Counted from the first letter of the stretch, positions 30,190-60,212 are shown. The stretch: DNA of 64,000 bases from Eutreptiella sp. 'Long Island Sound 2002' (GCA_964036045.1 OZ038378.1:173786001-173850000), one strand, 5' to 3'. A program made the numbers and translations. The notes: generated from the letters alone by a model not told the origin.

Positions 30190-31025
30190 CCCCCCCCCCC
30201 CCCCGTGTCCAACGAACACTGTGTCCAACGAACACTACCCGTTCGAACCGTATTTTTTGTGTACCTAATTAATTCGGTACATAATTAGGTACGAGACATC
30301 AGAATTGAGGTTTCAGGCCAAAGGTGCGGGGAAATGAGGGGCTGTTGCAATGTATGTTGCAGAAAACTCTAAAGCACTTAGGTAGCCATTACGGATGATG
30401 CCATTCGTGAGGTATGCCGCACCGCGTATTTTCCGAGTGGTTTGAAGTTGTCCCAATTGGAGGACACAGAATTTTTCAAGAAGCATGATCCTGAGTCCGA
30501 CTCTGATGATGGGTCACAAACTGATACGGATGACTCAGGTGACTCCGATGATAGTAGTGGTGTTGATGACTCTGATAGTGACGATGATCGTGAGTGTGAC
30601 GTGGTTTGGGCCAAGTCAGGGCGTGGGGTGTGGGGTTTGTGCCATGTTTTTGAGGACACCCTGTACCTAACCCGTGATTTGATGGAGGACAGTGCTGTCC
30701 CATCAAATCTGTCCGTCCCCAAGGTGAGCGACTCGGATGGGGCTGCCACTTCTGCCCGTGCCAAGAAAAGCCCCAAGCTCGGGGAGCACATTCAGCTTTT
30801 CCGCATGAAGCGGGACCGCAACAAGGGCTTCTACTCGGAAAAGTGTTAAGTGGAAGTCTCCAGCGCATTGTGCTTTGCATGGGCTGGGTATCTCGTGCAC
30901 AGGGATGTGTTACCGCCGGTTCACAACATTGTCGCGCGCAACGAACACTGTGTCCAATGAACACTACCTGTTCGAACCGTATTTTTTGTGTACATAATTA
31001 TTCGTTGGACACGGGGGGGGGGGGG
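30190..31025 (+). mobile_element. TA-flanked C-run TIR element A with an acidic ORF
   Basis: TA|C15-gtgtccaacgaa ... ttcgttggacac-G13|TA; ~45-bp subterminal direct repeat at both ends; frame open 30382-30849, ending HIQLFRMKRDRNKGFYSEKC. Confidence 0.8.
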
Positions 31026-31282
31026 TATGGTAATGAACTGTCTCAGACCATGAGTCTGAAGAGCCGGCACACTCTCGCACAATCTCGAACAATCGTCAAT
31101 GGCACCGGACAGTTTATATGAAAAAAAGATGTTTCACCGAGTTGTCTGTGGGAAGACAAATTTTGCATTCAATGCCTTGCAATCAATGACCATTAATGAA
31201 AATTCATGCCTTGTAATGTCTAGAGCCGCCTTTGGCGAGGCTTGTGTTTCTTACCTGATCCGTATTTTCTAATAATGTGGCC

Positions 31283-31454
31283 GCAAAGAGTCCCCATGCC
31301 CATACAGAGGATCCTTTTTGCCAATGCAAAGTGTCCCCATGCCCATATATAGGGGCCTTTTTGCCAGTGCAAAGTGTCCCCATGCCCATATATAGGGGCC
31401 TTTTTGCTAGTGCAAAGTGTCCCCATGCCCATATATAGGGGCCTTTTTGCCACG
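31283..31454. repeat. 43-bp tandem repeat x4
   Basis: gcaaagtgtccccatgcccatatataggggcctttttgccagt units start at 31283, 31326, 31369 and 31412. Confidence 0.92.
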
Positions 31455-32446
31455 GCAAGTCCATTTTTGGGCACTCTTTTGCATACTCTTTTTCAGGGGG
31501 ATGGTAGATGGAATGGCCACACATGAGCAAAAGCAACGAGCACAGGCGCAATTGAACACAAAATACACTGGAATAATCCATGGACCATCGTGAGTGCTTT
31601 GGATAAGGCTACGTCAATACTTGTGGTACGGCCACCAAGGTTTCCGGGCACATCATCACTTTCCTCCTCTGCAACCTATACCTTCCTAAAAAGGTACTTC
31701 TTTTTGGCAATGGGCAATTCAAAAGGTGAGAGTATTGAGCTGCACCGCTCAAAGTCTCAATTCCAGAATTGTTGGTTGTTTGTGCAGCGGGTACCAAAGG
31801 GTGTGTGTGCGTTGGCAGTAGGCGGGAACACATATCACAGCATATGGTTTTGTATTCATTGTGTGCATCCTATGCGCTCGCTTTGTACACCGTTTTCATT
31901 TGTGCCCTGCGTCCGTTGTTCATCCACCAAGGACTTGGGACAGTGGTGCTGAGGCCATTTCTGCCCTGGTTGGCAGTCGACCCCCCAGAGGGCTTCAGTA
32001 CCCTGAGGCAGGCAGCTCTTGCCCAGCCCAACCTAGCGCCAGAAGCCAAGCCTCAAGGCCTCACAGCTCCCCCATTAGCAGCAGGCTGTTGGCAGCCAGC
32101 AGGTGAGGCTGGAAGAGGGCATTGACTGATTGCAAAAATAGGTTAGAGGATCGTAGAGGGCGCACTTGTGTGCCTGCCGTAAGCGGACGCCTCTAACAAT
32201 TGCTGGCTGCTGGCGTTCAGCAACGCCATCGACATGCATGCCACACTTTGAATATTGCACACGGCATGTGATGATGCTTCAAATGGGTGGACACCACAAA
32301 TGAACTGAAACTACGTGCAGCCAAATCGGAGCATTCAAAAACAACCAATTGGCCTCTGATGGGGGCACAAAAATTGTTGCCAGAATAATTTTGGTGCCAA
32401 CGTCATGCCTTTGCCCAGCAAACCCGTCAGTCCTGTTCTCAGGGTC

Positions 32447-32467
32447 CTCATTTCGCCCCTGCCACAG
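32447..32467 (+). promoter_or_regulatory. Pyrimidine-rich tract plus CAG acceptor before the PDAT ATG
   Basis: tcatttcgcccctgccaCAG ends 8 nt before ATG 32476. Confidence 0.5.
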
Positions 32468-32475
32468 ACCCTTTT

Positions 32476-35400
32476 ATGACCCGCCGGAGGACCAAGAAGC
32501 ACCCGGAACCGCAGGAAAAAGCCGCCGCTGTTGATCACGATGCCTCCGTCAGCACTGTGCAGCCGGAGTCGCTCGCACCAGCTCCAGGGCCTATGAACTC
32601 CAGCTTCATTCTCCGCTCACCGAAGTCCCCTGCCCCCAGCCCCAACTCCAGCTTCGCTCCTGGCTCCACCAGGTCCAGCTTTGCGGCCCCCAGCTCTATG
32701 TCGGCCAGGTCCAGCTTCATTTGGGTCCGCAACCAGGAGCCGTTGAAGTACATCAAAAAGCGCCGCAAGAAGCTTGCAGAGGCCATGGACCGGGAGCGGT
32801 CCCGGTTCACCAACAGGTTCGCGCAGCTACTGTGCGTCGGACGCAAGAGGTGTGTGGCGTCAACAGGGCCTTCCCCCATGGGCCTCGGTCGGGTACAGTC
32901 GACAGCCGCGGCTGCATTTATGCGACAGCCACGGGTGCAGTTCGGTTGTGTCAGACAGCCACGGGCTCCATCTGGTTGTCCTCCACACATTGTACCAACC
33001 GAGCCTCGATTCCCCCAACCGATGCCCTCTGCACCTCCTGCACCTCTGGCTTTTGCCAGCTCCAACATGACTTGCCACTAGTGTCCGCCAGGTCAGGCGT
33101 GATCCGCAGGAGTTGGATCCTACCGATTCGGACATGGGATGCAGTTCCTGTTGAGTTGCAGGTGCGACCAGAACAGATATGACGGAGTGGCACATGGTGC
33201 GGGCTGATTCCTAACGAAATTTCATTACCCTCCCGGACACTAGTGGCGTGTCTGGTCCTACTGAGTTGTGTGCAGGATGCAGCTGTTTCCTACTATGTTC
33301 TGGGTGTGACAGGATCAGGTATTACCGAATAGAATGAAACTCAGTGCCCTGCCGGACACCAGTGAACAATCTTTGTCCACCACCGCCAGCCTGTCCGCCA
33401 CAGACCCCTTCCCATCGCAAAGGCTCCCTCCGTTTCTGCAGATTTCTGGCATACGGACTCCTCCTGGGGCTCCTCATCGGGGCCGGGGGGATGGTCATGT
33501 GTCAACCGGCGGTGCTGCCGGCGGGGGACTTCATGCAACAGCTCTCCACCAGCACGAGGCTGAAGTTCGGGGTGGAGCTGGAGTTCCGCGCCATGGCCAC
33601 GCTCGCCAGCCTCAAGGGGTTTGTGCCGGAGATGCCGTCGTTCCCTTCCAATTTCACGTGGTTTGGCCAGGAGGCGAAGCCTGGGCAGGTCTGTACGGAG
33701 GCACGGTGCACAGTCGTATGGTGTCGTGGTGCCGACACTTGGAGCCGCGTATGGCTGCACACCGCCGAACAAGGCGGCGGCACAGTACTGCAGCAGGCGC
33801 ACCGCGAAGGGGGACGGTCGCCTCGCGGCGTCCCCCCCCCCCCCCCTCCCTCCCCCGCGGCACACCGCACCGAAGGCCCGCAGGGGCACTCGCACGTTCC
33901 CCGCTGCCCACGCCCGTTGCCCGTGTCCCATGTCTCCGTCTGCTGTGTCCGTCCGATGTCTATCCGCGATGTCAGGCCTGTGTCGCTCGTTTGGGCCCTG
34001 TGTCGGTCCCCTTGTCCATGGCCCATGACCATGCTCTCCACGTGGGGGGCACGTTGACTGAACCGAACCGCCGCATGAGACATGCACCCGGTCCCACAAC
34101 AACAGTCTACAGGAGGGGGGGGGGCGGGATGAAATTGACATCGACACCACTTGTGCCAGGACCCGGCCGCTTCGGGGGACAGGGACAGGCCCCAGACCCC
34201 TTCCCCTCCAGGGACGCACTTGAAGGGGGAGGGGGGCTACAGAGGGGGTTGCAAGAGCGGTGGCAAAAGCGATCGCCGCAAAGGCGCAACATACGCTTCC
34301 ATGGGCCATGGCGTTGGGGAATGGTAGACTGTGCGTGTGCTGGGGTTACTAGGGGTCACCTGGGGTCAAAAAATGGCGACAAAGGATGAATTCCAGACCT
34401 GATTGGGGACGACCTGCAATGACACAAATTGTGTTCTTGAACCATGGACGCCCATTTTGTCCCGGTACTTCCGGCAGATTGCTCTTGCTAGAGCACCCTG
34501 AAGATGGTGCATTTCGAACGGTTGGGCAACCGGTCGGGAGCCCCCGCTCAAAAGACGCCCTGCCCCTCCGTCTTCAAGCGCATGCCCTCCGGCAGCAAAA
34601 GTGGGTGACTGTTCTGGGGACGGACAAAATGTCTTGAAGGNNNNNNNNNNNNNNNNNNNNNNNNNNNNNNNNNNNNNNNNNNNNNNNNNNNNNNNNNNNN
34701 NNNNNNNNNNNNNNNNNNNNNNNNNNNNNNNNNNNNNNNNNNNNNNNNNNNNNNNNNNNNNNNNNNNNNNNNNNNNNNNNNNNNNNNNNNNNNNNNNNNN
34801 NNNNNNNNNNNNNNNNNNNNNNNNNNNNNNNNNNNNNNNNCTTCTCCAGTGCAGCCCTTCTGGAACGTCAACTGTTTCCCAAACCCCCCATCGCCCCCAA
34901 CAGCGCCGTTTCGGCGGGATACATATTTACAGGCATTCATTTGTCATGGCAATCCTCCTCCTCCTTGTGTCCGAATGGGATGGGGCGCGGCGATTGCCGT
35001 GCTGGACCTGCATTTGGGGTACGGGGCGCAGTGATTGCAATGGGAATGCGGTGCAAGGGATGGGATGCAGTGGTTGCAGTGGGGATGGGGGACGGCATCT
35101 GCCGTGCCGCATTGCAGTGATAGACCTACGTTGCAGACCAGAGTGCATTTGGCGGGCCATTTTGTGAAGCAAAGGGCAGTGCAGGCGCTGCTGGCGCCAC
35201 ATTTGACAGTTTCTGAACCCTTGTTCAAGGCGTGCCACTGCACACAGTCTGGCACTTCTACCGGCACTCCTGTCTCAGAGGGAACGTTAGCGCGCCCGGC
35301 ACGCCGGGCAAAGTTTCAACGGTCACCGTCCCATCTCCAACTGTTTGGGGGTCAGCCCAACACAATGGGATTCGGGCACTTATTCCAGTGCCCAACAGAG

Positions 35401-38400
35401 CAATCAACGATTCCTCGCCACCACTTCTTCCGCTCATGCCTGGTTGAGTTCTGCTTTTGTCGGTATGACGGGGATAAACCATTGGGATAGGGCCGGAGCA
35501 TCGATTTGGATGGCTCCGGGTGCGCGCTGGGCAAACGTTCCCCCTCAAAACAGAACAGTAATGTGGAGTGCGCTGTGCAGCACTTCCGGCCCTTTGCACA
35601 GCTCTGCCTCATGTGTCAGGGGATGAGTGCGCCATGAAGTACTTCCGGCAGCGGATGTGGGGCACATTCACGATGCTCCAGACGATGTTGATGGACCCCG
35701 AGTGCTGGATGAATCACATCTCTTTGAATCTGACGACTGGTGTGTGCTGCCCTGCGTGTCCACGTGATAGGCCTTGGGCCCCCGTTGCGCCAGGCCACTC
35801 CGTGACAAACCGTTCACCTCAGGGAAGTATTAGAATGGCTGTACACCACCGGAGGGGGGGGTCCCCCCCCCTGAACCCCCCGTTAAAGACGTTGAAGAAC
35901 AAAGACATGAACATGAACGGTGCTGCAGTGCAGCGGAACATTCGTGAGCTGCGACCGGTCGCCTGTGACACGGGGGGGGGATCCCCCCCCCCAGACCAAA
36001 GTGACCATCGTGCGAAAAAACGAAATGCACAAATGGGAAAATCTGGTCGGGGCATTTTTGATACACAATTTTTTTGGGTCCCATCCCCCCCCCTCCCCCC
36101 CCCTGCTGATACTTCCCTGATTCACCGTGAGGCACTTCGTCCACTGACCTACGTGGCCAGACCTGTGCCAAGGATGGGTCCCACTGGAGTGGGTGGGGGC
36201 TCAGGGGCCTGGGTTGGTTGGTGGTCCAGGCGGGACACAGGGCCGGCGCTTTGGTCAGTGATTTTTGCTGCTTGGAAATTGGCTGATGTGGTAGGTTCGT
36301 GGGTCGATTCAGGTCAGCCACAGCCCAAAAATGATCTCCCCCTTCCCTGCCCCTGCCCTCCAGAAAACGAAACAAAACAAAAGCGGATCCACTGGCCATT
36401 GCCTCCAGAATCCCAACGCCCCTTCCCACACAACAGGCATACAAGTGTGGCGATCCAGAAGGAGTCAGCTTACCTCCAGCATGGGCGATTCCTTAGGGGT
36501 GGGCCAATTTTACATAGGGCGGGGGGGGCGTCCTACACCACCCGCTTAGAGGGGGGAGGGCCTTTATAGAAGCGGGTGGTTTGCGATGGGATGGGATGGC
36601 ATGCCTCAGCTTTGTGATTTTGATTTTGGTTGGTTTGGTGGAGGATGGGACCCGAGGGCATGGCACAACACACCATGTATCATTCCAGGTTGCACTGCGG
36701 GCAACGTTGCCATCTCTGTGACAAACTGAAGTTGGAACAAACCACTTATGTCTCGCCCCCATCGTACGACGTTGCACGCATTCATCGTCTTTCAGTCTGT
36801 GTCTCTCGTGTTCTCGCATGTTTGTGCAGTTGCTCAAGCACTTTTTCGTTGAGCCCATCCCCTTAGGCTCTCGCTCACTCAGCAGTTGAACTTTGGCGTC
36901 TTTGGCTGCTGCCGCCGCCTCCATGTTTTGTGCTGCTCAAGCCGCTATCCACTGCCTCTGTTCTCGGGGTGCGTCCTGCACTTCGCTTGGCTCCCCAAGA
37001 CCGGCAACTCCTGCTCTGTCTTTGTCTCTCCAAAGCGCTGTGCGGTCCCGTTTCTCAGGGTTGGACCCGAAGGGTCGAAAGCTGAGGCCTGCCCAGGGGT
37101 TTGAGGCGGCAGACTACTTCTTTCCCGGGTACTGGGTCTGGAACAAGGTGATAGAGAACCTGGCGTACTTGGGCTATGACAACAACAACATGTTGATGAT
37201 GAGTATGTGCCGTGCGCTTGTGCAGTCGACATGGGCGGGGGGCGCTGCGTGTTGGGCCGGACCCCCCCCCCCCCCCTCTGGAACCGCCACCCACACCAAA
37301 TGGCGGCAATAGGGAGCAGCCAACTTGGAGAACGGGGGTGACGGTGGTCGCGGCACGAACGCGGCCAGCGCCGTGGTGGTGGGGCGCCCCCCCCCCCCCC
37401 CCCCCCGGGCACCGCGCCGAGCCGGTGGGTGTTGTCTCCTTCGGGTGGGTCGCAATGGCCGAACGGTCAGTGTGTTTACTGAATGTCCCTGAACCCCAAG
37501 TTGTTTGCTGCGTTGAGTTGTGACAAGTGCCCGACAGTCCCGAGTGCAAACCCCAGGCCCGGGAGGAGGGAGGTGACGATCATTGAAGCGACAATCGCTA
37601 CCAGTCCCCTGCGGCTGATCGAGGGTGCAGGTCCCTTGAAGGTGCTTGCCAGCGGGTTTTCATTTGTGCGGGTCATGTATGGGCGCACCGGACGTTCTGC
37701 CATTCCGCAGGTTACGATTGGCGCTTGTCTCCGGAGAATATGGAATTGCGGGACAAGTACTTCACGAGGCTGAAGCAGATGATCGAGATCATGGTCAACA
37801 ACAAAGCGAAGGCCAAGGCTGTGGTCTTGGGCCATTCCATGGGGGCCAACGTGTTCTACTATTTCCTGAAGTGGGTGGAGAGCGATAAGGTACCGCTGGA
37901 CGTTTCCGCGCCTCCACAAAGGGCAGCCGCATGGGACATGTCGATATTGCCGGTTGTAGTTGGCAAAGGCCAATCTTTCTGGCCATCCGAACACCCCCAT
38001 CCAAACGATTTGCGTCTCATTCGTCATGAGAAGGTCGTGGGTTTGAAACCCACCGCGGGTTTCCATACCACACATCACATGACATGAGCTGCTCCATGTC
38101 CCTGGATGTGCCCCATCGCCCTTCCGTTTCTTGGGATGTGGCGTTCTGGTGTTCTGAGGAGAGGGTGTGTCCCGTCCAGGCGCCTTGCCCTCCGTTCGGC
38201 TGATGGACGGTGGAAGCTGAGCTGGTGCGACCTGACCTGAGCTCTTCTGCGTGTTGTGCGCTCAACCAATGCCCCGCTCTTTGTGCCTGTGGTGTTAGGG
38301 CGGCAACGGCGGCCCCGAGTGGGTGGAGACATATATCGAGGCCTTTGTGAACATCGCCGGCCCAATGCTCGGGACCTCCGTGTCGCTTACGTCGCTGCTG

Positions 38401-41400: not shown

Positions 41401-44400
41401 CAGCTACGTGCTTCAAGAGGCAACGGTGAAGCAGAACTGGCAGCGTGTGTTGTTTAACTGCCTGCTGATGAGCACCGATGGTCTCATACTTGCACACAGC
41501 CTGATCAGTAGTTCCCAGGATGGCACTGAAGCACATTCCCCACCTAAAAATGCAACACGAGGGGGTGGGGGGCAGGAAACAAAGATGTTGAAATGGTTTC
41601 TCAAACCTCAGACCCGGAGCAGGCAACACCCCGACCCCCCGCCCCAGGGATGAGAAACTGCCTGGTCTGCATTCATTGGGTCACCCCACCCCACCCCACG
41701 AGGTGTTGATTGGCTGAGTTGGTGGGTGAATGGGGGGATCTTGTGGATTTGCTTGGGTCCCGTTCTGTGGAGTCTAACTTGATCATGTGCTTGCTATTGT
41801 ATCGGCGGCATACACCAGCTTCCCTCCGTAACCCCAAGCCCCCCGGTTGGGAAGAAATCCCATCGATGTGGTGGAGCAGCTGAAAAAATCATTTGCGGGG
41901 GAGGGGATCGTTGGAGCGACCCAAAAAATGAAGGGGGGGGCCTTGTGACCGAAGGCTTGTTTTAGCCTGCAAAACCAGCCTTGTTTAGGACGAGCAGTGG
42001 CTTGAAGTCGGGCTGTAAAGTTGCCTGGGCGGAAGATATTCCCACCATGATAAACACCTCAAAATGATCCGCGCGTCGGGCGGATCATTTTGATTTGTCC
42101 CCCCCCCCCCCACAGGGGTGGGGGGGGAGGCCGCGGACTCCTCCCTCGCCCCAACTGCGGGGACGCGTACGAAGGGGAACCAGCCCCGATCCCGAACCCT
42201 TAGACTGACGGCGTGCGCTACGTGCATGGTCTACCACCGCTAAGGCCAACATGGCATCAAACAGCATGCAACTACGCCCAGGACAGACTGGGATATGTGG
42301 GCCAGCAGAAGCAAGTCGCCAAAACCACCAACACCAAGCACACCAACACCAACAAGGAGCCCCCTTGAGCCAAGATCTTCCTCCTCAAGGGGAAGAAGGG
42401 GACAGGGTGCGACGACCCCCCTCCCCCTCCCCCTCCCCTGCCCCCTCCCCACAGCAACACGCTCCCCGCCACCCGCTGCCCCCCAGGGCAGAAAGAATAG
42501 GGAGGGCCCAGAGGAAACTGGGCACGGGGAAAGGGACGAACAAGGGGAGACAACAGGGCAGGGCAGACCGCGCTCGCTGAAAACGGTGCAGTGCGCAGAA
42601 GGAGGAGAAGGAGAGGACAAAAGGGAAAGAATCATTGTGGTTGTTAGAAGCCCCTGTCAGGACAATTATCCTGCAGATGCACACCCCAGCGCGCACAAGT
42701 CAGTGCTGGAGTCAGCAAACCCAGCATGAACTCGGAGTGTGCATCTGGATGCACCTGGTCAATGGCACGGGCAACAGCCCATCTCCGGGACAGCCGACCC
42801 TGGAGTAGTCAAACAGGACAAGTCATCCAGGGGCTTAGTTGACACAACCAAAACATGTTCGGACCCACAGAGGGTCAGAATGAGCAGTGGTGAGAGGCCA
42901 ATAGGCACCGCCGAAGGCAAACGACCTAATACCGAGGCCTTGTGCCAACCCCCCCCCCCCCCCCAATTTCTGCAACAGCTCAAGTTCGGCGGGGCAAACA
43001 GCCCCGGAGGAAGCGCCACCAAGTGCCAAAAACCCAGAAACGGAGGGCGATGGAGAGGGTTTTTGGTCTTTCTTGTGGGGAAGCAAAAGGGCCGGTCGTT
43101 CCGAACATGCGAGTGGAATGGGGGCTAGCCACGGTGAGGGTACACCGAAGGGCGCACCGCCACCGGGGTCGGGACCGCAACGGACCCGCCGCCTCTTGTT
43201 CCATGAGAAGTTCCGGTGGCACACGCACCACGTCCGTGCCATCCAAGCGGACAGGATCCTCGCTGAGAAAAGGAGGAGAGGGTGGTTCTCCGACTACCCC
43301 GAGGCAGGAAGCAACATGTACTTATTGGCACCAGACCAGGTGTACAAAGTGCGAGTGCTAGCCTCAACGGTATGGGTGCCGGAGGTGAGACGTTGGGAGC
43401 CGGAGGTGTTCATCATCGGGGAGGGCATCAACTTCACAGTGGAGGACACAACCAGGTTGATGCAAAACTTGCACAGGGCAAACGTGATTGCCGAGCAAGT
43501 AGGCATCCGGCTGTACAAGGAGTAGAAGATGGAAGCCAAGTGAGAAGCGGACAAGCCCCACCCGCGGGTGACAAGAGGTCGTGGAAGCGCACGGTCCCAC
43601 AGTTCCGACGGCGTCAAGGTGACGGGGTGCAAATTGATCAGCGCAGTGCCGAGCACAAAGGCGCGACCCGGAACGCACCATGGCATGGCCTAGGCCTTGA
43701 AGCAAGAGGGACTGAGACCGGGTGCCAAGCGACCCAGGAACCCAAGGGACGGGCAACCCGGCGCCGGGAGGAGAAAGAAGAACAATGAAAGCAAAAAGCC
43801 TGATGGAAAGGAGAGTCTCACACCATCAACATGGCTCTGCTGGGGAGGAGAAGATCCTCCAGCCACCGAGACTCACACTGGGGAGCCGCGGCCCCCAGTG
43901 ATACAGCAACAAGGCACAACGATGTGGTCTGAGGTACGGCCGTGGACGGGCCTCGGGACCCATGCCCAATGGAGACGGCGCCGCAGTCTCCATTGGATGC
44001 GCCCCGGCTACCACAACGCGCAGCGAGCTTTCTCGCCGGCGGAGTAGGGGGCAAGGCCAAACAACAGGCAGGGGGAAGGCAACCCCCGCACTTTTTTAGC
44101 CAGGGTGGTGACCAACACCAACCACAACAAAACAATGAACTCTACACGTGCACCGAGTTCTTCTCGGGGGGTCCAATGGGGCCTCAGCGAGATGCCCGAT
44201 GTGGCAACGCAAGCCCACCGGGGGCCGCGCTCTCAAGGGAGTGACCACGGCAGTAAGTCCCAGCGTGCTGGCACTGAGAAGCGAGCAGGGGAGAGACTCC
44301 TTCCCTCGCGTAGCAACTCAACCAGAAAAGGGACGCACCACGTCGTCAAGCGCCCGGACCAAGCCGGGAGAAGGGGGCCAGCAAGGGGCCCTACGCACCT

Positions 44401-46271: not shown

Positions 46272-46314
<43 letters not shown>

Positions 46315-47131: not shown

Positions 47132-47187
<56 letters not shown>

Positions 47188-50100
47188 ACTTACCCAGCCT
47201 TTGTCCCCCCCCCCCCCCCGCCACCGCAATCCGGTCAGTGTGCCGGGGATTCTGCGCACAAGCCCAATTTTGGGCAAAAATCCCCGGCATAAAATTCCCT
47301 GGTTGGCTGACCGGACAAGGGATGTGTGGGATGTGTGCGCACAAAATTCCTGGCACACTGACCGGACAGCGGAGGTGCGCGCACAAATCCGTCCTCCCTT
47401 CTTGCGCCCTTCCCTTTCACCCTTTCCTCCCTCCTCCCCGTCCCTCCCCCACCCCTGGGTTTTGAAGGAAGGGAAAAGAAGCCAAAACTGATAAAGTCCA
47501 TCATGCCGAACCCCAAGAGAGCGAGGCCTCACCCCTAAATATACGCTTTTGGCTTTGGCTTCCCAAACCCGGTCTAGCCAGGGGTCGTCAGGCGTCTGGG
47601 CTGGGCTGCTGTGGAGCACTGCCTGAACCGTTGCCCACAAAGGTGGAGGCACAAGCTGTCTACCGCCTGGACGGGGTGGGGGAAGGCCGGGGGTGGGTTG
47701 CATGTTCGGTGCCCCCCACCTCTTCACGTGCCTGTGACTGAATGTGAAGCCTGCCTGACATGCACACCAGTTGCACTGTCGGTCGCCAACCAGCCTGCAT
47801 GGCAACCCGGCCACCCCCAGGGCTGTCCTTTTTTTTTTGTTAAGGATGGCCCTTAAAAACAGCCCCTAGGGACCACCAACCGACAACCGCCGCCAACCGA
47901 CAACCGCCGCCAACCGCCAACCATTGTTCAATAATGCTTCTATGGTCTTGTGTCTTGTCCATGTCTTGACCACGAAGCAAAGAGCGTCCCTGTGAAGGTT
48001 CGTTTCTGTTGGCATTACGAAACCACCCTTTGTTCCCTTAAGGACAGCCCCGTCCACCCCATTCACCACCCGAGTGTCCCATTCGCAGGACCGCCTATTC
48101 AGGGGTACCACGGGAACAAGGTGAGCAGGAGGGGAGGAGGGAGGGACAGCACGGACCCCGCGACACTCCACTCATGCAAAGGTAAGCTTGGGCAAGCGGC
48201 ACCCCAGGCAACATGCAGCGCACCACCGATGTGTGACGCTTGGTGGTCCCCTGGGCCTGTGTTACACCTTCCCACATCATTTGTGGTGGAGAGCACCCGG
48301 TCTGAGAGCAACTGAAGGCGAAGCCTGTCGCCGCTGGTGTGGGAGTGTGCGCCACGGTGGGCAGAATGCGCCCCACGTGTCGGAGCTTGTCCAAGTCCCA
48401 TGTGCCCGTTGCGGTGTCCCCTCCGCTGTCCGTGCTCGCCTGTCATTCAGTGCACTGCCCCGGGCCCCCAGCATGAAGATCTACTGTCTGTATGGCGTGG
48501 GCATCGAGACGGAGAGGGCTTACTACTACACCGCAGTTCCGAACTCCACGAAGTTCGCCATTGACAAAAGCTTCAACAGAGGCACGTCCCCTGTCCCTTC
48601 CCCACCCCCTTTCCATGAGTTTGCTGCACTGCCATACATGCACATGTGCCCCCAAAACACGTTCGGACCCACAGAGGGTCGGAATGTGCAAGGGCGAGAG
48701 GCCAATAGGCGCCGCCAAAGGCAAACAAACCAACACCATGGCCTCGTCCCCCCCCCCCCCCAAGCCCCGAATTCGGCAGGTGTGGGGCATTGGGACCAAA
48801 AAGTTGGCGCCCAATGCCAATACGCTGCGATTTCAGATCCCTGTGGCCTATACATGCAATTTCATGCCCGTCTCCTCAATCCATTTCCTCCCAGTCTTTG
48901 ACACCGGTGTTTGTACGGCATGCCATTGGTGTATCAGTGTCTACTTCATCCTATGCAGCCACTTGCATGGGGCCCCAGAATGTGGCATCTGGAACGGCAT
49001 CGCCTGAGTGCAAGGGGACACCAGGAACCCGGCTGTCCAGGATCGTGCGGTATTGAGGGCATTTGTGGATTGTCTAGGGTCGTTGATGGTTTTTGAGGGT
49101 TGTGGATTGTTGTGGCGAGTTGTCGAGGGTTTTGGACTGTTGTGGTGGGTTGAGGGCCGCTGATTGTTGTGGAGGCTCATTCATGTCTGTTCAGTGCTGT
49201 GAGAGAGGTGGTGAGTCTTGCAGGGTCGCAATACGGTTGGCTTGTGGCGGTGTTCGGGGTCAGGTCGAGATGGGGCCAGGCTGTTGGTTTGGTGGGGGGG
49301 CATGTTTAGAGGGGGGTTGTCGGGGCGGGCAGGCTGTAGGTGTCGGGAATGTGGGCAGATTTGGGGGCGAAGCTGCAGGGTAGGGCTCCTTTTGGGGGGG
49401 GTAGCCCCCCCCCCCCCCACAGCAGTGCTGAGTTATTAAAAGGAGCCCTAGGGTGCAGGCCTACGTCTGCAATGGAAACCCACCACAGCACTGCAGTAAT
49501 GGCGCAGGAGGGTACAGAACGGGGTCAGCAGGGGCACAGAGCCCCGTGCGACACTGTCGCGGTCCCTCGGGCCACTGGGGCAGAGAGGGTGCAGGAGGAG
49601 TGGTGCGTGGGGCCGGCTGGTCCACAGCACTGCGATTGTGGGGCCGGTGCGGGCCTCACTAGCGTGGGGCCAACGGCTGTCGCCCACGGACTGGCACCGG
49701 CAGGGCCTGCACTCTCGCACGGCCGCACCCGCGCGGCACTGTGGCGAGGGCCTAGCGATACGAGACGGGCAGGTCCTCATCTACGACATCGAATTGTTGC
49801 CCCGGAGCCTTGAGCAAGGGGTGCGCCGGCAGCCCCCCCCCCCCCCCCGTGTGCGCGAGCCGGCGCGGATGGGGGCACTACGATGAGCCGTGGGGCGCAC
49901 GCGGCAGCCTTGCGCAAGCACAGCGCCGCCCACACACATGTTCGCTTCCCTTTACACCTGCCACCTTGCTTCACCCCCCGTGTGATGTACCCCGCCATGT
50001 CCGCCGAGTGCTTGCCCGTGCGTCTTTCCCCGGGCCTCTGGAATACGGCCCCGTGGGGGCTTTGTGGTCCCTGGCACACGGGGAATGTGCGGATTGGACA

Positions 50101-53100
50101 AGCCAATGTCATTGTTAGGCCCGAGGGGCCCGTCGCTGGCACCGTGTCCCGGTGTCCGGTGGGCCAGCCCCGACTGCCTGCCTGCGCCGCTTTGGTGCCC
50201 GCCGACGAGGAAAGAAGACCTCAGTCCCCCCCCCACCGCGCGCCCAATCCCGTGAGGCACCCCCTCCCTCCCCTTTTGCTCAGCCTTTCTGGCAAACCCC
50301 TCATTTTGCTGTGAAACCCCCCGCTGGCCGTCGAGAGTTGAGGGTTCACTGTGAGCCGCGTCCCTGCGGGGGACAAAGCAGGGGCAGAGGCAGAGAGGGG
50401 CCGAGGAGCAAAACAGACAGAGCAAAGCGGAAGGCTGCAGAGTGGCATGTGGGGGCCTGCGGCCTTTTGCCAGCTGAGGAGCGGGGGAAAGGAAGGGCGG
50501 TTTGCCGACGCCTGCCTCGCCTTCCCCCCCCCCCCCCCCCCGCGTCTCTGACACGCTCACCCTCTCCGGTCTCTGGTACAGGGCGTCCAGCGCGGGCCAG
50601 GCCAGCCTGACGCCCGCAGCCCGGCGCCGTGCCACTGAGGCGGTCGTAAGCACCCTAGCCCTACCTTCCCTGTCCTTTGGTGATGTGTATGCCCTATGGG
50701 CATCACTGCCGTACCTGCACAGCCTTCAAGACCAGCCCCCCCCCCCCGCAACCCCCAGCGGTCGCCGTACAGGACCCCCAGGTATACGTGCCAGGGTCCT
50801 ACACCCTGGCGGCGTCACATTTGGTGCGGGGGCTCGCGTCCTAGCAGGTGTGCAGTGCAGGGCCCCTACATATTTCACTCCCAGTGGAGCCTAGCTGGCA
50901 CCCAGGAGCTCCGGTACTACTCATTATATGTCCGCCTGCGGCCGTGTGCTGGGCGCTTGCCCTACTTGCAGAGGCGGAAGCGCGTCCCTCGTGGGCTGGC
51001 GTGGCCTTGCTTACGGCTGTGCCTCCGGGTGACGGCGCCCTGCCCCTGCCTGCGCCTATGACACCCTATGCCTGCGGGCCATTGTGGCTTTACACCACAG
51101 CCGGTGTGGCCCAGCGGTGGGCCCTCACGCCGGCAGCCGCTCCCACGCACTAACTGTGAAGGAGTACGACTAGCAATGACCCAGGCTTGTGCGCGTTGTC
51201 AGGGAGGCTGAGGTAAGACGAGGTCCCCTCCTGCCCCCGACCCCCCGGCGCCGGTGACAGCACCGGGTCCATACAGGACAGCGCGCAGGAGACGGACGCA
51301 GCCAACGTAAAGGTAGCACCCCCCCCCCCCCCCGGGGCCCACCAACAGACCGTGACGGGGCCAGGCGCGGCCCAGCCGTGTGACCCGACGTGCCTCGCAG
51401 CCCCGCGCCACGCGTGCACCACACACACTAACGCGCGCGCCCACACACACATAGGCACAACGGCATCTCCCTCCCGCGTGTGCGGTACGGGGGCCGTCAG
51501 CAGTCCGGTAGGCCTTGTGACCGGACAGCCGGGAGTTGTCCAGCCCAATCACGCGGCGCAGGGAAGGACGCACGCGGTGGGTCTGGCCGTCCGGGGGAGC
51601 CCTTCACCCAACCCAACCCAACCCAACCCCCCCTCCCCCCGTCCTGGTGCCCCTCGGACTGGGGGGTCCAGTGCGCTGCTGCGCCTGCGGACCCCCCACG
51701 ATATGCACCGACTGCCACCATCTGACACGCACCCGACAGCGCCTTGCAGCGCTCAACACGCACCCAACAGCGCAGGTGCGTGTCGTGTGCTGTTGAGTGC
51801 GTCTCGAACATGAGATGGGGTGTAGAGCCATGTTCATGTGGGGAATTGGGGGCGCCCAAAGATCTGAGCAGTGGGCTGGGTCCCCCCCCCCTGGCCCAGG
51901 GATACATTGGAAGGGGCGGAGGTCCCCCCCCCCCCCCACACCTCCGGGTTGTCCAGCCTATGCCAAGATACCATCTCCCTGACGGCACGTGCCAGCTTCA
52001 ATGGCATTTGCAACCGACAGCAACCGCCTCCAACCGCTTTGGCAGCGGCATCCAACCGCCTGTCTAACCGCTTCTGAGGCCCCTTACCTTCTAATGCATC
52101 CCTGCCCCCGCCCCCCAGTCCCACTCTCACCTACCAACGGATTGTGGACAATTTCCTCCTGAAAACTCGAAGCAGTGCGTGCACTCGGAAGTACCGACCG
52201 GCACACTTGCTGAGCCTTCATGGCAACCCCCCCCCCCCCCCCGCCCCCATTGCCAAGTCCATGTCATCCAATCATTGCACTGCCCCATCTCACGACAGGG
52301 GGCGCCACCAAAGGGGTGATGATGACGAATGGGGACGGCACGGTGCCCTTGGTGAGCCTGGGGTACATGTGCTCCAAAGGCTGGCAGTCCCGGCGGTACA
52401 ATCCCCACGGCATTCAGGTCCGCACGCGGGAATACTCGCATCAGACCACGGGCCTGGGCCTGCTCCCGTCGCGCGGGGAACGGACCGGGGACCATGTGGA
52501 TGTGCTGGGGAACACGGAGATGATTACGGATATGCTGAAGATTGCGGCAGGTGCTCAGGGGTGTCGTCTGTGCGTCGGCGTCATGCCCGGAGGCGGATTG
52601 CTGAGGCAGGGGTGGCACTTCATGCCATCGTAGATATGCAGTAGTTCATTGGATATTGAGGGGGCACTCTGGGCCAGGGGGGTGCGGTGGTGTCGGGGTG
52701 TGCTGTTTTATCTGCAAAAAATAGTCAACACGCACGATCGCTGCCGGTTTGGTGGCAGTGGTGGCCATCACCAGCTTGGTGGCCTTGTGCATTCTGCAGT
52801 GAAACACATATTGTCTCTCTTAAGGACGCTCGTTTGGCTGTGGCAGTGAAAGTTGGCGCCGAGACCAAGGAAATTGTCGACCTAAGCCCATGCACCAGCA
52901 ATGTGAAGAGCAAGGTCTCATCGTACGCCTAGCGAATCAAGACCACGTGAAACTCTTTTTTTCCCCTTCAGCTTAGACCAATTTTGCTGTGAAAATTCGT
53001 GCGAAAGGAATTTTGTTTTGTACTGTGAGACAGGGGTCATGGGAATGATCTGCGCACCCGCTGCAAATAATAGTGACATTATGGGAAACGGAGCCATTTG

Positions 53101-54646: not shown

Positions 54647-57506
54647 GGCGTGTGGCTGCGACGGTGTGGACCGCTCAGCGGCTGCGGCGCTGTAGTCCGC
54701 TGTCTTTGAAAATCCCTCCCACAGGCCCTCGGGGCTTGTGCGTGTCCCCGTGGGGAAGGGGGCGGGCAGGGGTCCGCGGTGGCCCCGCGAGCGGACCAAG
54801 AATGCCCCAATGGGACCGAAAATGATGGTTCGCCTGTGGCCATCGCCCGCACGCTCTGCCTCTACCCCGACCCAGTGTATCGGTATCCCGCGTCGTGGGT
54901 GTTTGCCCCCCCCACGACCTCGTGCCCCACACAAAGCACACCCATGCGGCAAACCTACTCCACCCTTGTGGACCCCCCCCCCCCCACCCCCACACCGCTT
55001 CACCCATGTCACATTCTGCAGTTCAGGCAATTCACGCATTGGGGCACGGTCGGGCTGTGTTTGGGGCGCCAGAGGGTGGGTTTGGTGGTCGCGCGCGCCG
55101 GAAGGGATACCCAAGGTGCGCAGGTGCCCCCTCGACCTCTTTTCCACCGCATTATATTATACTATACAGTGGATGGCAGTCTGGTGACTACACCTTTGTG
55201 TAAATGAACATCAATATCTCAATCAGTTATAGATCAGCGGTTCTTGCTTTCGCCTGCAATTATGCGGCCATTCTCAACTGAAATTGTCATGTACAGTGAT
55301 CCTTACCTTACATTGTCATTCTGCCACCACTGTGTGCATCTGGACCATCTACTGGAGCAAACAAAAAAACACACTGTGATGGCGGACATCCTGTCCTTTG
55401 ATTGAGCACATCAAGTGCCACAGGGTCAGGGTTTTAAGAAACAGCTTTCCTTGTCAAATGTGAGCATAGCTGAACGCCATGTGCTGCTGTGTTCCAGAGA
55501 TGACAACCTCCGAAGTCATCGCTTGGAATTTTGAATGCTATGCCCTGTGAGTTGACGGGACGGACGTTCTGTCTTCCACGCATTCGGAGCTGTGCACTTT
55601 CCACCAGTGCTTTTACCGTCGTTCTTGTTAGGGGGGGCTACTACCCCAGCCCGAGCCTTGTCCCAGCCATACCTCGAAATCCAGCATCTCAGGCTGAGCC
55701 CGAATGAGGCAGTGGGTGCAGTCCGGTGGGGCGACAGAGTGCCGCATGCGCAGGTGGGCCGGGCCGCAATATTGGGCAAAGGCGGTGTACGGCTCCCCAA
55801 ATGGAGCCCTGCTTGCTCGAGGACAGCGCGGGGCTTTCAGGCCCATGAGAGCACCTCGGTCGCACCGCGCGCACCGCGCGTGAGGCACTCTCCATGCGCA
55901 AGGTCGATGCTGCTGGACGTTGCACCACCGCCGTACACAAGGGAGGTGCCGTGCAGCCATTGGGCTCGCCGCTGGTGGTGATCCCCCTTGGGGTGGGGTG
56001 AGGGGCAGGCCTGTGGGCAGTCATGCCAGACCGGCGCCGTGTTAGTTTGTCTCCGACTCTAGACATGCCAAACGAACTCTACTTGAGTCTCATCCCCAGA
56101 CCTTCGGACGCATTGCAGTCAAACCACGTTGACCAGTGCGTCCACGGCTCTCCGTACGGCCCTCCGTGCCATTCTGGTGCACCCTCCGCCCCGGCCGGTC
56201 CTCCCGCTGCTTCTGGAGGCTGTTGCCCTCCCGCCGCCATCCGCCGGCACAGTCTGGGCCGTGTCTCCTGCACACTGCAGCAGCACCCCCTTGTCGGCCT
56301 GGAGTGAATGTGACAGGGAGGGGCCGTGTTTGCCTGCTTCCACGCGGTGGGTGGCCTTATGCGACTGCCGGCAAGTCCCTCGGCGCATGGGCGTGGCTTA
56401 AGCGCCTTCGTGATGCTGCACCGTTTATAAACCCATTCATTTCCGCCGTCCCCCCGGGCCTCAGCTCTCAGGGACACGGCACTCCTGCCCATCGCCACCC
56501 CCCGTGCCCTGCCGTACGTGCCAGCGGCTGCACGGGGCGCGCGCGGCACTGGGGCCGACGCCAACCGCCACAAAGGTGCGGCGGGGTCCACAAACGGCGA
56601 GCTTCGCGATCGAAGTCGCGAATGCAAAGCATCCGATGGGCACGTCTGGATTAGTTTTACCGACAGCAGCTGAAGATGCAGGATCCCTCCAGCACCGCGC
56701 GCGCACCGTGCAGCCCCCCCCCCCCCCGCCCCCCCGCCCCCCCGCCCCCCGAAACAAAACAAACAAGGCCCTTCCTCGTCACCGCCTGTTCCCCTGACCG
56801 ACCCTGTCTGACTTCCGAACCCCCGAAAAGACGTGGGCTGATGAGTGTTCCGCTGTTTTCTTTCGTTTGGGGGGGCAACCAAAGGACTGGCGGGGGGTCA
56901 TTCGGTGGACTTTGTCCTGGAACCCACTGCCCACTCCCGCTGTGGCAGGAAACAGCCCGATTTCAGCGAATGTTATTGTAATTGAACTCCTTGCCTTTGG
57001 GCCAGGCATCAGCACAGCCTTGCCTAGCAACAGCATCCCCATCTGACCGTCAGTTTTCCCCGACTTCAGCTGTGCTTTTGCAAGGCGGGGGCTTACCTTT
57101 ACCCTCCAACCCCCAGCCAGGGCACGCCACGCTTTGTCAAAGCCACCCCTGCCCCTGCACAGATAACGCGTTGTCCCAACAAACACACAGATGTTGTTTA
57201 GGCCAAGGTTTGACGGATTGGATTTTGCAGTTCCTTTTTTTTGGTTGCATCAGAGCTGCCTGTGTTTGCTGTGGGTTGTAGCACGATTCGCTGCAGTGCT
57301 ACTGCTTCCCCCGAGATGGTTTGCAGTTGTGCTCAAGGTCATCAGTGAAGTCTGCCTGATCTTGCAGGCAAACGGCCGTGTTCAGGCATTGCATTTGCTG
57401 CTGTTCTGGATTCTCTTCGTGGTTTGTCTGCGCAAATGGTGCGGGCCATATTAATTTTGCACTGAATTTCATAAAGCCGGATGTCGTAGAGAGTCAAATC
57501 AAAGTA

Positions 57507-58097
57507 CCCCCCCTCCCCCTTGCGCAAGCACGGCCTTGTCTAAGCACGAAGACCCCGTGTGACCGTTGTTTTGATGGGTTTTTCTGACCACGGTTTTTAT
57601 GGTCAGAAATTCATTGTTTCGTGATTGTGCACTGATTGTACAGGGAAAGAAGGGCTGGGTCATGTTTGTGATGGTTCCTCTTGCTCACAACAACATTCTG
57701 ATTGGTACTGCAACCCAATGGAACCTGATTCTGATTCTGATTCTAGTCATGATAGTGGCACTGATTCCGAGCTCCTCACTTCTGCTCCAAAGCCTGCCCC
57801 GAAGGGGAAACATGTACAACTATTTCAGATGAAGCGCAAGGTTGGAAAGGGTTTCTATTCCGTACCCGTTGATGGGCAGTAAGGACACGAGGACCATGCT
57901 GAATTTTGCCTACACGTTGTGTTCTAGTGCCATGTTTGTGAGTGATGTGCTTGGTGTGGGGTACGGGCAGGTTTTCTGTGTGTAGTGTCTCTTTGTGTTG
58001 CGCGTCACGCGCAAGCACGGGCTTGTCTAAGCACGGGGACCCCGTGTGACCGTTGTTTTTCTGACCTTGGCCGTGCTTGCGCAAGGGGGGGGGAGGG
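57507..58097 (+). mobile_element. TA-flanked C-run TIR element B
   Basis: TA|C-run-ttgcgcaagcacggcc ... ggccgtgcttgcgcaa-G-run|TA; ~50-bp subterminal direct repeat; ORF ending HVQLFQMKRKVGKGFYSVPVDGQ* at 57882. Confidence 0.8.
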
Positions 58098-59163
58098 TAG
58101 GCCTTTTGGTGTGCAACGCGGTGCGTTGCTGTGTTGCAAGTGGCTGCCCAATGGTCCAAGGGCACTTCAGTGTGCACGCAAAGTGTTGGCACTGCGGCAG
58201 CTGCCGAGACCCTTGTGTGAAGGCATGTCACACATCTTTGCAGCGTATCCTAATCCCCTTCTTGACCAACCCCTTCTTTTATTTCCTCTTTTCGTTGTCA
58301 TAATGTTCTGGTCTACAAGTCTTAGACTACCGCAAGGGCGGCTGCGAGTGTAAATGATGGAGACAATGGATGTGCATGACAGTGCGCATGTGGTGCCCCC
58401 TGACCAGCCAGTCTGGCCAGTCTCTGAATCCAATGTGAACCAGAACCGATGCTGCATGTCATGCCACATTACAACGATGTATCACACACACAGCAAAGTG
58501 CTGGACTACGCACTCAAAATAAAATGATGTAAAGCAAAGGCAGTGTCCGACTTCTGCAAAACGGTGCAGGAAGCCCTGAAGCACCACATTTTACCCTGAA
58601 TCTAGTGTTTAGCAATAATATTTACGGGTCTGAGCGGACGGGAGTGAGCTGATCTGAACCGGACGGGGGGGGGATCATCCTCTCTTTTGTACATAGTTTG
58701 ATGATTCGAGCCGCCAGTCGGCCATTTCAGTTTGAGCTGGTCGCTATCTGGTCACGTGGCACCACGCGTTTGTTTTGGGGTGATGAGGCAGGACAGGACA
58801 AGGGGGGGGGGTCACAAGCAAAATTTTGCTTTACACAGCTCACACACCATCTGCGAGCCCTTTTTCGAGCGTCGTACAATGGAAGTGGTGCGTTCGCTGC
58901 TGCAAACAGCCCCTGTTCTGCTCATGCTCGATGTACAAGACTGTCTGTGGCCTGTGGAGTTGAGTCTGCTGCCTCGTGATACCGCCACCCCACCACTTTG
59001 AGATCTTTGAGCGCTTCCTAGTGATTGAGCGGTCAACATGCTTTGCCATGTATCCAGGAGCACAGTTTGTACCACGTTGGTTCTGTGGTGCATGCCAGAA
59101 AGCCCCAAGTACAAACCCTGTCGTATGGGAGGGGGGAGGTGACAAGTCCCCCGCCCCCCCCCG

Positions 59164-59230
59164 CCTTGTCCAAACAACGCGAGGTGTTGTTTCTGCAACT
59201 TTTTGGAACTTTTCCGTTGTTTGGACAAGG
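59164..59230. mobile_element. 67-bp minimal MITE related to element C
   Basis: Perfect 16-bp IR ccttgtccaaacaacg / cgttgtttggacaagg. Confidence 0.55.
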
Positions 59231-59480
59231 TGGTGGGCCGGGTGGGTAACCATTATGAGGAGCCTGTGCACACTGCCAGGCACACTTACACCATCGCTAT
59301 CTTGGAGATCTCCTCCTCCTCAATATTCCTTTGGGGCCGGGAGATGGGTGACGGAACCGTGGACTGGACATCTTTGTCGGGAATGAACAATGATAACATT
59401 GTGGGGCTGTAAGCCCCCCCCCCCCCCGCTCAAGCAAGCCCTTGGAGGCAGCCCCTGTACCATGTGCCACTCACTAATTA

Positions 59481-60212
59481 CCCCCCCCCCCCCCGTGTCC
59501 AAGCAACGCCCATGTCCAAGCAACACTAGGCGTTGGGGGTCCGTCAATTTTTGCACTGTTGATTTTGGCGGTGTGTTTTTCAATTTGTTCTACTGTGTGC
59601 CATGTGTGCTTCGTGATACCTTGGTTTTGAGATGCACTTTGTTCATATTTTGTGTCAAGGCAGCTCTGTTGGCCAAGAGGACTGCCGCATGTGACAAGGT
59701 TGAGATAAGTGGTAACTTCGACAGGTGGATGTCGCAACAATATTGTGAATGGATTAGTGACAAAGTTGATGAGCGGAACCTGTCCGACAAGAGTCCCATC
59801 CCTTGCCCAGACCATCGGGAGTTTGCAAACGTGGTGGCTGCAGTTTGTGCCCAAACCTGCACCCAAACCTCCAGCAAAGCGTGATGCACAGGGCAAGAAG
59901 AAGAAGCACGTCCAACAGTTCACAAAGCGGTATAGCTTGACCAAGAAGGGCTTCATTTCCGAGCCTGTGGACGTGTAACGTTCAATGTTTTCAAGCTGCA
60001 TGTGCCAGTGCTTGGTCTGCAATGCGCAGTGTTTTGTTGCATATGTCAACCCTTTGCTTGTGTACCACCATCTCCGCTTCAAGCCCCCTGAGGACGGGCT
60101 ACACATGTATCACGCAAGTTGCGGCGCATAAGCAACACACGTATCCAAGCAACACTAGGCATTGGTTCTGTCAATGTCTGGTCATTTACCGTTGCTTGGA
60201 CAAGGGGGGGGG
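59481..60212 (+). mobile_element. C-run TIR element C
   Basis: TA|C14-gtgtccaagcaacg ... cgttgcttggacaa-G9|TG; tccaagcaacactaggc repeated at 59515 and 60144; ORF ending HVQQFTKRYSLTKKGFISEPVDV* at 59978. Confidence 0.75.

Follow-up and report, generated by a model that had tools for sequence, protein, structure and literature searches.

Short C-capped elements in a Eutreptiella genome as probable deletion derivatives of a euglenid pogo-like transposon family

Three short elements (A, B and C) within a 64,000-nucleotide window of the genome of Eutreptiella sp. 'Long Island Sound 2002' (GCA_964036045.1 OZ038378.1:173786001-173850000) have dissimilar DNA, yet their + strand reading frames end in related peptides. 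This raises the question of why elements that encode no transposase carry a common peptide. The first-pass annotation proposed that they were kept under selection for a small protein. The longer copies described below indicate that A, B and C are very probably non-autonomous copies with internal deletions, belonging to three diverged lineages of a single euglenid pogo-like family (IS630-Tc1-mariner, DDE_1, DD35D). Numbered from the first nucleotide of the window, the elements and the ends of A are:

30190..31025, + strand: element A, 836 bp, probable internal-deletion derivative of a ~2.9-kb pogo-like transposon
30190..30271, + strand: left end of A, with a run of 15 C, a terminal inverted 15-mer and a 62-nt subterminal repeat (30210-30271, repeat search)
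30939..31025, + strand: right end of A, with the direct repeat copy (30939-31000), the inverted 15-mer and a run of 13 G
57507..58097, + strand: element B, 591 bp, probable derivative joining three segments of a longer element, with TA on both flanks
59481..60212, + strand: element C, 732 bp, member of an older family of elements of ~750 bp with 82-89% identity between copies

Direct reading and a repeat search confirmed the common layout first attributed to the three elements: TA, a C-run, a short inverted end and a subterminal direct repeat, followed by the mirror image. Element A is flanked by TA at 30188-30189 and 31026-31027. Its inverted arms (30192-30216 and 31001-31025) are 25 nt long and 100% complementary, and its direct repeats (30210-30271 and 30939-31000) match over 62 nt with 95% identity. 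The arms of B (57505-57535 and 58069-58099) span 31 nt, including the TA, with 94% complementarity, and its direct repeats (57522-57572 and 58009-58059) are 94% identical. Element C has 23-nt arms (59486-59508 and 60190-60212; 96% complementary) and direct repeats (59501-59536 and 60130-60165) with 86% identity; it is flanked by TA on the left but by TG on the right. Related copies with the same ends number hundreds to thousands per element, with 1,704 first-look candidates for the C family, and the form of B is present in at least 10 genomic copies with 89-98% identity. The description of the elements as non-autonomous, TA-flanked transposons with terminal inverted repeats (TIRs) and no transposase was also borne out. 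An N gap (34641-34840) falls between elements and no claim relies on continuity across it.

We also scanned the window systematically by pairing every C-run with every G-run (57 x 44) and searching for inverted 14-mers. The scan returned A, B, C, a mini-element and three low-complexity G/C-rich pairings, and nothing else. The mini-element and a proposed solo left end are:

59157..59237, + strand: mini-element with 23-nt inverted arms (59157-59179 and 59215-59237) 35 nt apart and no ORF
4587..4603, + strand: proposed solo left end, a run of 17 C after TTA, not confirmed

The mini-element is flanked by degenerate C-rich and G-rich runs and belongs to a multi-copy family of 70-85 bp with 269 first-look candidates in the genome. 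The 67-bp derivative originally placed at 59164-59230 is real. The solo left end proposed at ~4587 was not upheld, as it has no partner within 12 kb and only 7 weak genome matches. We rejected the poly-C run as a family marker: of the 65 C/G runs of at least 9 nt in the window, only the end runs of A, B, C and the mini-element belong to the family.

The homopolymer caps are inherited with the elements. For example, an interrupted run (C7-T-C5) is common to seven of the eight B copies having an intact left end, which also led us to reject untemplated end tailing at each insertion as the source of the B cap. TA was present on both sides of 25 of the 39 detected elements, with unrelated flanking DNA. 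By analogy with pogo elements, the TA would be a target duplication rather than the terminal bases of the element. A search for an empty site for C found none; both of its flanks are single-copy in the genome.

Longer copies with the same ends were found elsewhere in the 2.28-Gb genome and encode transposases of 477-682 aa. Two A-type copies (L035:3252-6188 and L037:879-3729) carry a frame of 505-510 aa, and the frame of the window's A corresponds to its last 155 codons. A B-like copy (L053:1757-4691) has a 477-aa frame ending in the B peptide. A further copy (L051:1624-4164; 2,541 bp, TA flanks), from a lineage with 6,956 candidate short derivatives, has a single intact 682-aa frame that terminates in G-E-H-V-Q-L-F-R-M ... 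K-K-G-F, and the long-copy transposases end in the motif G-x-H-x-Q-x-F ... K-G-F. Full-length elements are 2.5-2.9 kb long and TA-flanked. At both ends, a lineage-specific inverted 15-mer lies inside a C/G homopolymer cap, and a 36-62-bp subterminal segment is present in direct orientation. No autonomous partner for the C lineage was found among the scored genome matches, only the related lineages L064 and L051. The candidates L062, L063, L064 and L065 were rejected, as they proved to be a LINE fusion, frames open by read-through, or a deletion derivative of another lineage.

Several lines of evidence place these transposases in the pogo group. The Pfam DDE_1 profile (PF03184; cut-off 22 bits) matched L053 with 32.9 bits and L052 with 23.0 bits. 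The matches to L051 (18.2 bits) and A (15.1 bits) were below the cut-off and each spanned profile positions 16/17-175 of 177. Every long copy retains the motifs N-G-D-E-T, D-G-A-P-x-H and Q-A-C-D. Furthermore, the second and third catalytic Asp align gap-free to D-G-S-K-T-H and Q-P-L-D in a canonical DDE_1 frame of the same genome. The predicted catalytic triad has a counted DD35D spacing of 35, and pogo triads have 29-56 residues between the last two Asp (PMC7386202). In the A lineage only, and at the expected N-terminal position, HTH_Tnp_Tc5 matched below its 22.2 cut-off (19.8 bits, E = 7.7e-4); AlphaFold predicted helices in this region with low confidence. In a Foldseek search with the AlphaFold core (pLDDT 60-90), the top matches were the Mos1 (E = 1.4e-3, probability 0.96) and Sleeping Beauty (probability 1.00, TM 0.50 on target) catalytic domains, with no match at E <=0.001. 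The arms of 23-31 nt with 94-100% complementarity are terminal inverted repeats, and the 2.5-2.9-kb copies have the same ends.

The N-terminal half of the transposase comprises a beta-barrel, a WW domain in some lineages and a putative helix-turn-helix region, and leads into the DDE_1 core. The core is followed by an acidic Ser/Asp tract, a beta-rich module (V-V-W-A-K ... G-V-W-G ... H-V-F ... L-Y), a Pro/Lys-rich linker and the terminal motif. The canonical DDE_1 elements of the same genome (L023-L034) are without this tail. A word-based search of 5.8 billion proteins recovered the C-terminal module and tail in only three proteins from one source. The C-terminal 96 residues had no usable match in the ESM Atlas, and a phmmer search of the 682-aa protein against PDB sequences returned only low-complexity matches to the acidic tract. 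Confidence in the models of the entire protein (pLDDT 51) and its last 91 residues (pLDDT 48) was too low to support a fold search with the tail, and the five predicted strands are only a hint. We can only guess that the C-terminal module acts in chromatin tethering or nuclear import.

The frames of A, B and C do end in the peptides originally quoted, which align column for column with each other and with the transposase C-termini. Seven columns hardly vary (G, H, Q, F, K, G and F) and, as first noted, the likeness is in the protein and not in the DNA. The remnants in the window are:

30377..30384, + strand: 8-nt filler at the deletion junction of A, holding an in-frame TAG
30382..30849, + strand: A transposase remnant, last 155 codons and stop of the A-lineage transposase
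57775..57882, + strand: B transposase remnant, with Pro/Lys patch, terminal motif and stop
59687..59836, + strand: C remnant 1, transposase stretch from the third catalytic Asp motif A-C-D-K-V-E-I-x-G-N-F
59850..59978, + strand: C tail, with Pro/Lys patch, terminal motif and stop

The A remnant contains the end of the DDE_1 region, the acidic Ser/Asp tract, the VVWAK beta module, the Lys/Pro patch and the terminal motif, which has two private amino-acid changes. A piece of the acidic tract (57718-57774) lies upstream of the B remnant, whose end is the same as that of the 409-aa (L050) and 477-aa (L053) frames. L064 and L051 contain the corresponding stretch, to which C remnant 1 can be aligned. 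In the consensus of the C family, remnant 1 is out of frame with the tail, and the 76-codon tail frame lacks an ATG ahead of the motif; a 25-nt deletion peculiar to the window's C is the sole reason for the 89-aa frame of that copy. The short A, B and C frames alone matched nothing in a Pfam search, and the family surfaced only through the long copies.

Element A is composed of positions 1-187 and 2212-2852 of the 2,851-bp full-length copy L037:879-3729. Consistent with this, positions 1-189 and 198-840 of an A query map about 2 kb apart in full-length copies. The ttag before 30382, first interpreted as an acceptor, is part of the 8-nt junction filler. Many independent deletion breakpoints were identified within the A family, and the window's A is a one-off derivative whose structure is in no other scored copy. 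Both A and B have ends in common with longer, transposase-bearing elements. The internal deletions would most likely arise by interrupted repair of the excision gap, losing the middle and keeping both ends, a process known for other cut-and-paste elements. The short copies would then be moved in trans by the transposase of full-length relatives. The stop codon is only 180-235 bp from the 3' end of the element, and for this reason the C-terminal 31-155 codons are kept. Passive carriage of the transposase end would thus give A, B and C a common C-terminal peptide despite their dissimilar DNA.

These results argue against short elements kept for a small protein, because in longer copies the family's own pogo-like DDE_1 transposase ends in this very peptide. 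The motif is, indeed, the transposase remnant that the first-pass annotation had named as evidence against its own proposal. Neither the one-off A, with its private motif changes, nor the C consensus tail, without an ATG, fits the proposal, and the 89-aa frame of the window's C is copy-specific. Furthermore, the non-coding relative of 70-85 bp is also multi-copy.

The alternative argument against the proposal, a lack of purifying selection among short copies, finds no support in the C tail (dN/dS 0.18); dN/dS within the young A family was about 1. The young A family appears to diverge neutrally: dN/dS between two full-length A copies was 0.98, and the A singleton substitutions were even over codon positions, with a pN/pS (0.52; p = 0.01 versus neutral) slightly below 1. 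Between subfamilies and lineages, dN/dS was 0.07-0.19. In the last 31 codons of the C tail (26 copies), shared variants numbered 14, 15 and 66 by codon position, and the dN/dS was 0.18, compared with 1.4-1.5 in the remaining two frames. On internal branches, parsimony changes also favored the third position (2, 1 and 13), whereas shared variants in remnant 1 of the same elements were flat (45, 37 and 39). No third-position excess was found in A and B. The excess in the C tail is not predicted by passive carriage alone and needs an added assumption, for example that functional elements repeatedly served as templates for the 3' end.

The same pattern raises the alternative that, at least in the old C family, short elements are favored if they keep a translatable tail peptide, which may regulate or assist transposition. 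The last 31 codons are open in 20 of 26 C copies, and all sampled C copies have one deletion architecture, which suggests one short ancestor. In-frame derivatives that join N- and C-terminal parts also exist (L050, 409 aa; P0002, 375 aa). However, the consensus tail has neither an ATG before the motif nor a common frame with remnant 1, tail singletons are neutral (14, 19 and 20; pN/pS 0.74), A and B have no such signal of selection on the peptide, and the non-coding mini-element also spreads. Moreover, the signal is importable: a functional element can act as template for the tail in repair synthesis that begins at the 3' end, but such synthesis cannot reach remnant 1, which is beyond about 350 bp absent from C. 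A tail-specific tree-incongruence test was uninformative, with consistency indices of 0.33-0.43 in every block; such high homoplasy is as expected with frequent exchange between copies. We regard the alternative as unlikely. It is similarly doubtful that the tail (terminal 30-45 residues), or a truncated protein ending in it, acts in trans on transposition or chromatin, a role for which C offers the clearest case; if true, the transposon would encode a type of cofactor or inhibitor that has no description among pogo elements. Finally, C/G runs of at least 9 nt are very common and mostly unrelated to the elements, but chance or low-complexity likeness of ends and peptides in a C-run-rich genome is extremely improbable given the hundreds to thousands of copies per element with the same ends, the seven nearly invariant peptide columns and the DDE_1 match in longer copies.

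Deletion from a pogo-like parent has parallels in known systems. MITEs and deleted elements (Stowaway-type of Tc1/mariner, Ds of Ac, deleted P) likewise kept their ends, lost the transposase and reached high copy numbers, and also have varied breakpoints and junction filler. Unlike them, most derivatives here keep a long 3' piece readable as the transposase C-terminus, and this piece has codon-structured variation in the C family. P-element repressors (KP, 66-kDa) are the nearest analogue of a functional tail peptide only. They, too, are deletion derivatives possibly encoding part of the transposase, as L050 and P0002 could do in frame. However, P-element repressors retain the N-terminal DNA-binding part and not the C-terminus, and the C consensus tail is without a start codon.

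The parent family has the TA flanks, short TIRs, DDE_1 domain and Asp triad common to the pogo superfamily (Tigger, Fot/Fot-like and Passer; Gao et al., 2020), together with a putative Tc5-type helix-turn-helix in the N-terminal half (match below cut-off). The 35-residue spacing counted here equals that of Passer and Fot/Fot-like (PMC7386202), and the element (2.5-2.9 kb) and transposase (about 500-680 aa) sizes are inside the published pogo ranges (PMC7386202). In contrast to pogo elements, the family has a heritable homopolymer (9-17 C) at the start of its ends instead of a fixed terminal sequence, and its 36-62-bp subterminal segments are in direct rather than inverted orientation. The third Asp is in Q-A-C-D, not Q-P-L-D, some lineages have a WW domain, all have the C-terminal module and tail, and two are below the Pfam DDE_1 cut-off. 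Our literature search found no paper linking pogo with Euglena.

The parent family is thus an unusual pogo variant with heritable poly-C caps, a WW domain and a lineage-restricted C-terminal module. It extends pogo to euglenids; a 2020 survey of pogo-like elements reported few Tc1/mariner elements in early-branching eukaryotes (PMC7325037). The variable-length heritable homopolymer ends raise the question of how the distance from binding site to cleavage site is measured. The WW domain, two small beta modules and conserved tail resemble protein-docking add-ons, which suggests tethering to host factors. For annotation, the short frames ending in the motif, hundreds to thousands in the 2.28-Gb genome, should be masked as transposon remnants and not called as genes. 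Furthermore, the codon-structured variation of the C tail bears on sequence exchange between deleted elements and their autonomous relatives.

Direct reading and a repeat search recovered the architecture described for elements A, B and C in the first-pass annotation, and the peptides quoted there are the ends of + strand frames in all three. The source assembly comprises 2.28 Gb in 2,317 contigs.

Ends and coding remnants of elements A, B and C
30190-31025, element A, frame on + strand: TA, 15 C, a 25-nt perfect inverted arm (which takes in part of the run) ... 13 G, TA
30210-30271 and 30939-31000, subterminal segment of A: 62 nt, direct orientation, 95% identical
57507-58097, element B, frame on + strand: arms of 31 nt (94%), direct repeat of 51 nt (94%), TA on both sides
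59481-60212, element C, frame on + strand: arms of 23 nt (96%), direct repeat of 36 nt (86%), TA on the left, TG on the right
59687-59836, transposase remnant 1 in C: from the third catalytic Asp motif onward
59850-59978, transposase remnant 2 in C: the tail

Pairing every C-run with every G-run in the window returned A, B, C, a mini-element and three low-complexity G/C-rich pairings. The mini-element, noticed earlier as a 67-bp derivative near C, is genuine, multi-copy and non-coding; neither the pairing nor a genome search confirmed the solo left end proposed near 4587. An N gap (34641-34840) separates A from B and C and is spanned by no element or claim.

The shared peptide had been proposed to be a small protein of its own, with a transposase C-terminus in longer copies named as the observation against that reading. 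This is what we found: aligned with long frames from the same genome, the window frames of A, B and C fall at the transposase C-terminus, where the residues G, H, Q, F, K, G and F hardly vary. The distance from the stop codon to the 3' end is 176 bp (A), 215 bp (B) or 234 bp (C), so deletions that spare this end easily spare the last codons. Residues 585-680 of a 682-aa family protein, used as the query in a word-based search of 5.8 billion proteins, matched three proteins from one source, all of the same transposase family; one of them, which belongs to an additional lineage, is an in-frame deletion derivative with the motif E-H-V-Q-Q-F ... K-F-F. A model of the last 91 residues (pLDDT 48, low confidence) predicts five strands, the final two formed by the motif, and is no more than a hint of structure.

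First-look candidate counts, which are not censuses, were 1,944 for A, 4,685 for B and 1,704 for C. Most A copies match window A at 1-189 and 198-840 only, with extra DNA between, and in longer copies the frame extends upstream through D-G-A-P-x-H and Q-A-C-D motifs. Complete A-type elements of 2,851-2,937 bp (L037:879-3729 and L035:3252-6188, loci elsewhere in the genome) carry a 505-510-aa frame, and further upstream another frame in which Pfam finds a WW domain (E = 3.5e-12 and 2.7e-13). Window A corresponds to positions 1-187 and 2212-2852 of the 2,851-bp L037 element, with an 8-nt filler (30377-30384) at the join, a structure found in no other scored copy. The 'ttag' before 30382, formerly taken for a splice acceptor, is part of this filler, as is an in-frame TAG. 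Element B is assembled from three segments of a longer element, namely 217 bp of its 5' part, a stretch of 65 bp and 318 bp of its 3' part; the B-like full-length element L053:1757-4691 encodes a 477-aa frame ending K-H-V-Q-L-F-K-M-K-R-K-V-G-K-G-F-Y-S-V-P-V. A third lineage (L051:1624-4164, 2,541 bp, TA flanks) has one intact 682-aa frame ending G-E-H-V-Q-L-F-R-M ... K-K-G-F. In the C family consensus, remnant 1 and the tail are in different frames.

Pfam DDE_1 scored above its curated cut-off in L053 (32.9 bits) and in a further locus, L052 (23.0 bits); L051 and A stayed under the cut-off, with matches that cover the same part of the profile. An HTH_Tnp_Tc5 match fell slightly below cut-off at the expected position. 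The second and third catalytic Asp, spaced 35 residues apart, match their counterparts in a canonical DDE_1 frame from the same genome in a gap-free alignment. The best PDB matches of an AlphaFold model (pLDDT poor overall, 51; fair in the core, 60-90) were the catalytic domains of Mos1 and Sleeping Beauty, and 25 of 39 detected elements have TA at both ends. The DDE_1 matches and the Asp spacing, together with the more tentative HTH, fold and TA evidence, agree with how PMC7386202 defines the pogo superfamily. A literature search, incomplete in coverage, found no paper linking pogo with Euglena.

Residues 11-54 of the L051 transposase (L051:1876-3915) are predicted to form a small four-stranded beta-barrel at the N-terminus (pLDDT 60-76); the region has no Pfam match and is conserved in the B and A lineages. 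L050:3950-5176 (409 aa) and P0002 (375 aa), a protein from the protein search, are in-frame deletion derivatives that join this barrel to post-catalytic and C-terminal parts, with a WW domain in L050. The first catalytic Asp is missing from both, and P0002 is without the second as well; truncated transposase-like proteins could be encoded by such derivatives. An A-type element at L036:2469-7755 has grown to 5.3 kb through an internal tandem-repeat array, and its 1,625-aa open frame still ends in the transposase tail. RNase H-bearing retroelement frames directly adjoin copies of these elements or are fused to them in frame (L022:2137-3015 and L062:1208-2911); in L062 the retroelement interrupts a C-type tail after K-K.

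The terminal C-run lies inside the TA and is 9-17 nt long. In B, 7 of the 8 left ends that are intact share one interruption of the run (C7-T-C5), which indicates that the run is inherited rather than newly added at each insertion. C/G runs of at least 9 nt number 65 in the window, and the elements studied own only those at the ends of A, B, C and the mini-element. Some C/G runs sit inside other transposons (L028, L032). C/G runs must be generated by some genome-wide process or by several repeat families. In the repeat search, a motif resembling G-C-C-T-T-G-T-G-C-C-A-A directly precedes a 13-16-C run at five window sites:

42925-42964, motif and C-run
47186-47221, motif and C-run
48729-48764, motif and C-run
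52203-52242, motif and C-run
54951-54986, motif and C-run

The motif also adjoins elements in L057 and L065, and with its C-run is probably the end of another poly-C-terminated repeat family. Just upstream of C, 59414-59446 (TAAG, 14 C, then G-C-T-C-A-A-G-C-A-A-G-C-C) resembles the left end of a further C-capped element; a genome search with the 40 nt that follow the run gave 7 weak matches. On the downstream side of A, 260 bp away, is a tandem array of ~43-bp units (31283-31497; 4-5 copies at 90-92% identity).

Between subfamilies and lineages, dN/dS is 0.07-0.19; between two full-length A copies it is 0.98. Singleton substitutions show no preference for any codon position (28, 21, 26 in A; 14, 19, 20 in the C tail), and window A has two private amino-acid changes in the motif. 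The 89-aa frame of window C results from a 25-nt deletion specific to that copy and is absent from 21 of 26 copies; the consensus C tail frame has no ATG upstream of the motif.

Variants present in at least two of 26 C copies over the last 31 codons, which are open in 20 of them, number 14, 15 and 66 by codon position. The tail dN/dS is 0.18 (1.5 and 1.4 in the two other frames), and changes on internal branches of a tree made without the tail number 2, 1 and 13. About half of the third-position counts can be put down to CpG sites, which do not account for the shortage at the first two positions. Neither remnant 1 nor the non-coding parts show such a bias, and homoplasy is equally high across all blocks of the C copies. 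Repair synthesis from the 3' end could copy the tail off an autonomous template and would not reach remnant 1, because ~350 bp absent from C precede it, counted from the 3' end, in the full-length element. The reading we tentatively favour is that the third-position pattern of the C tail was imported from functional elements.
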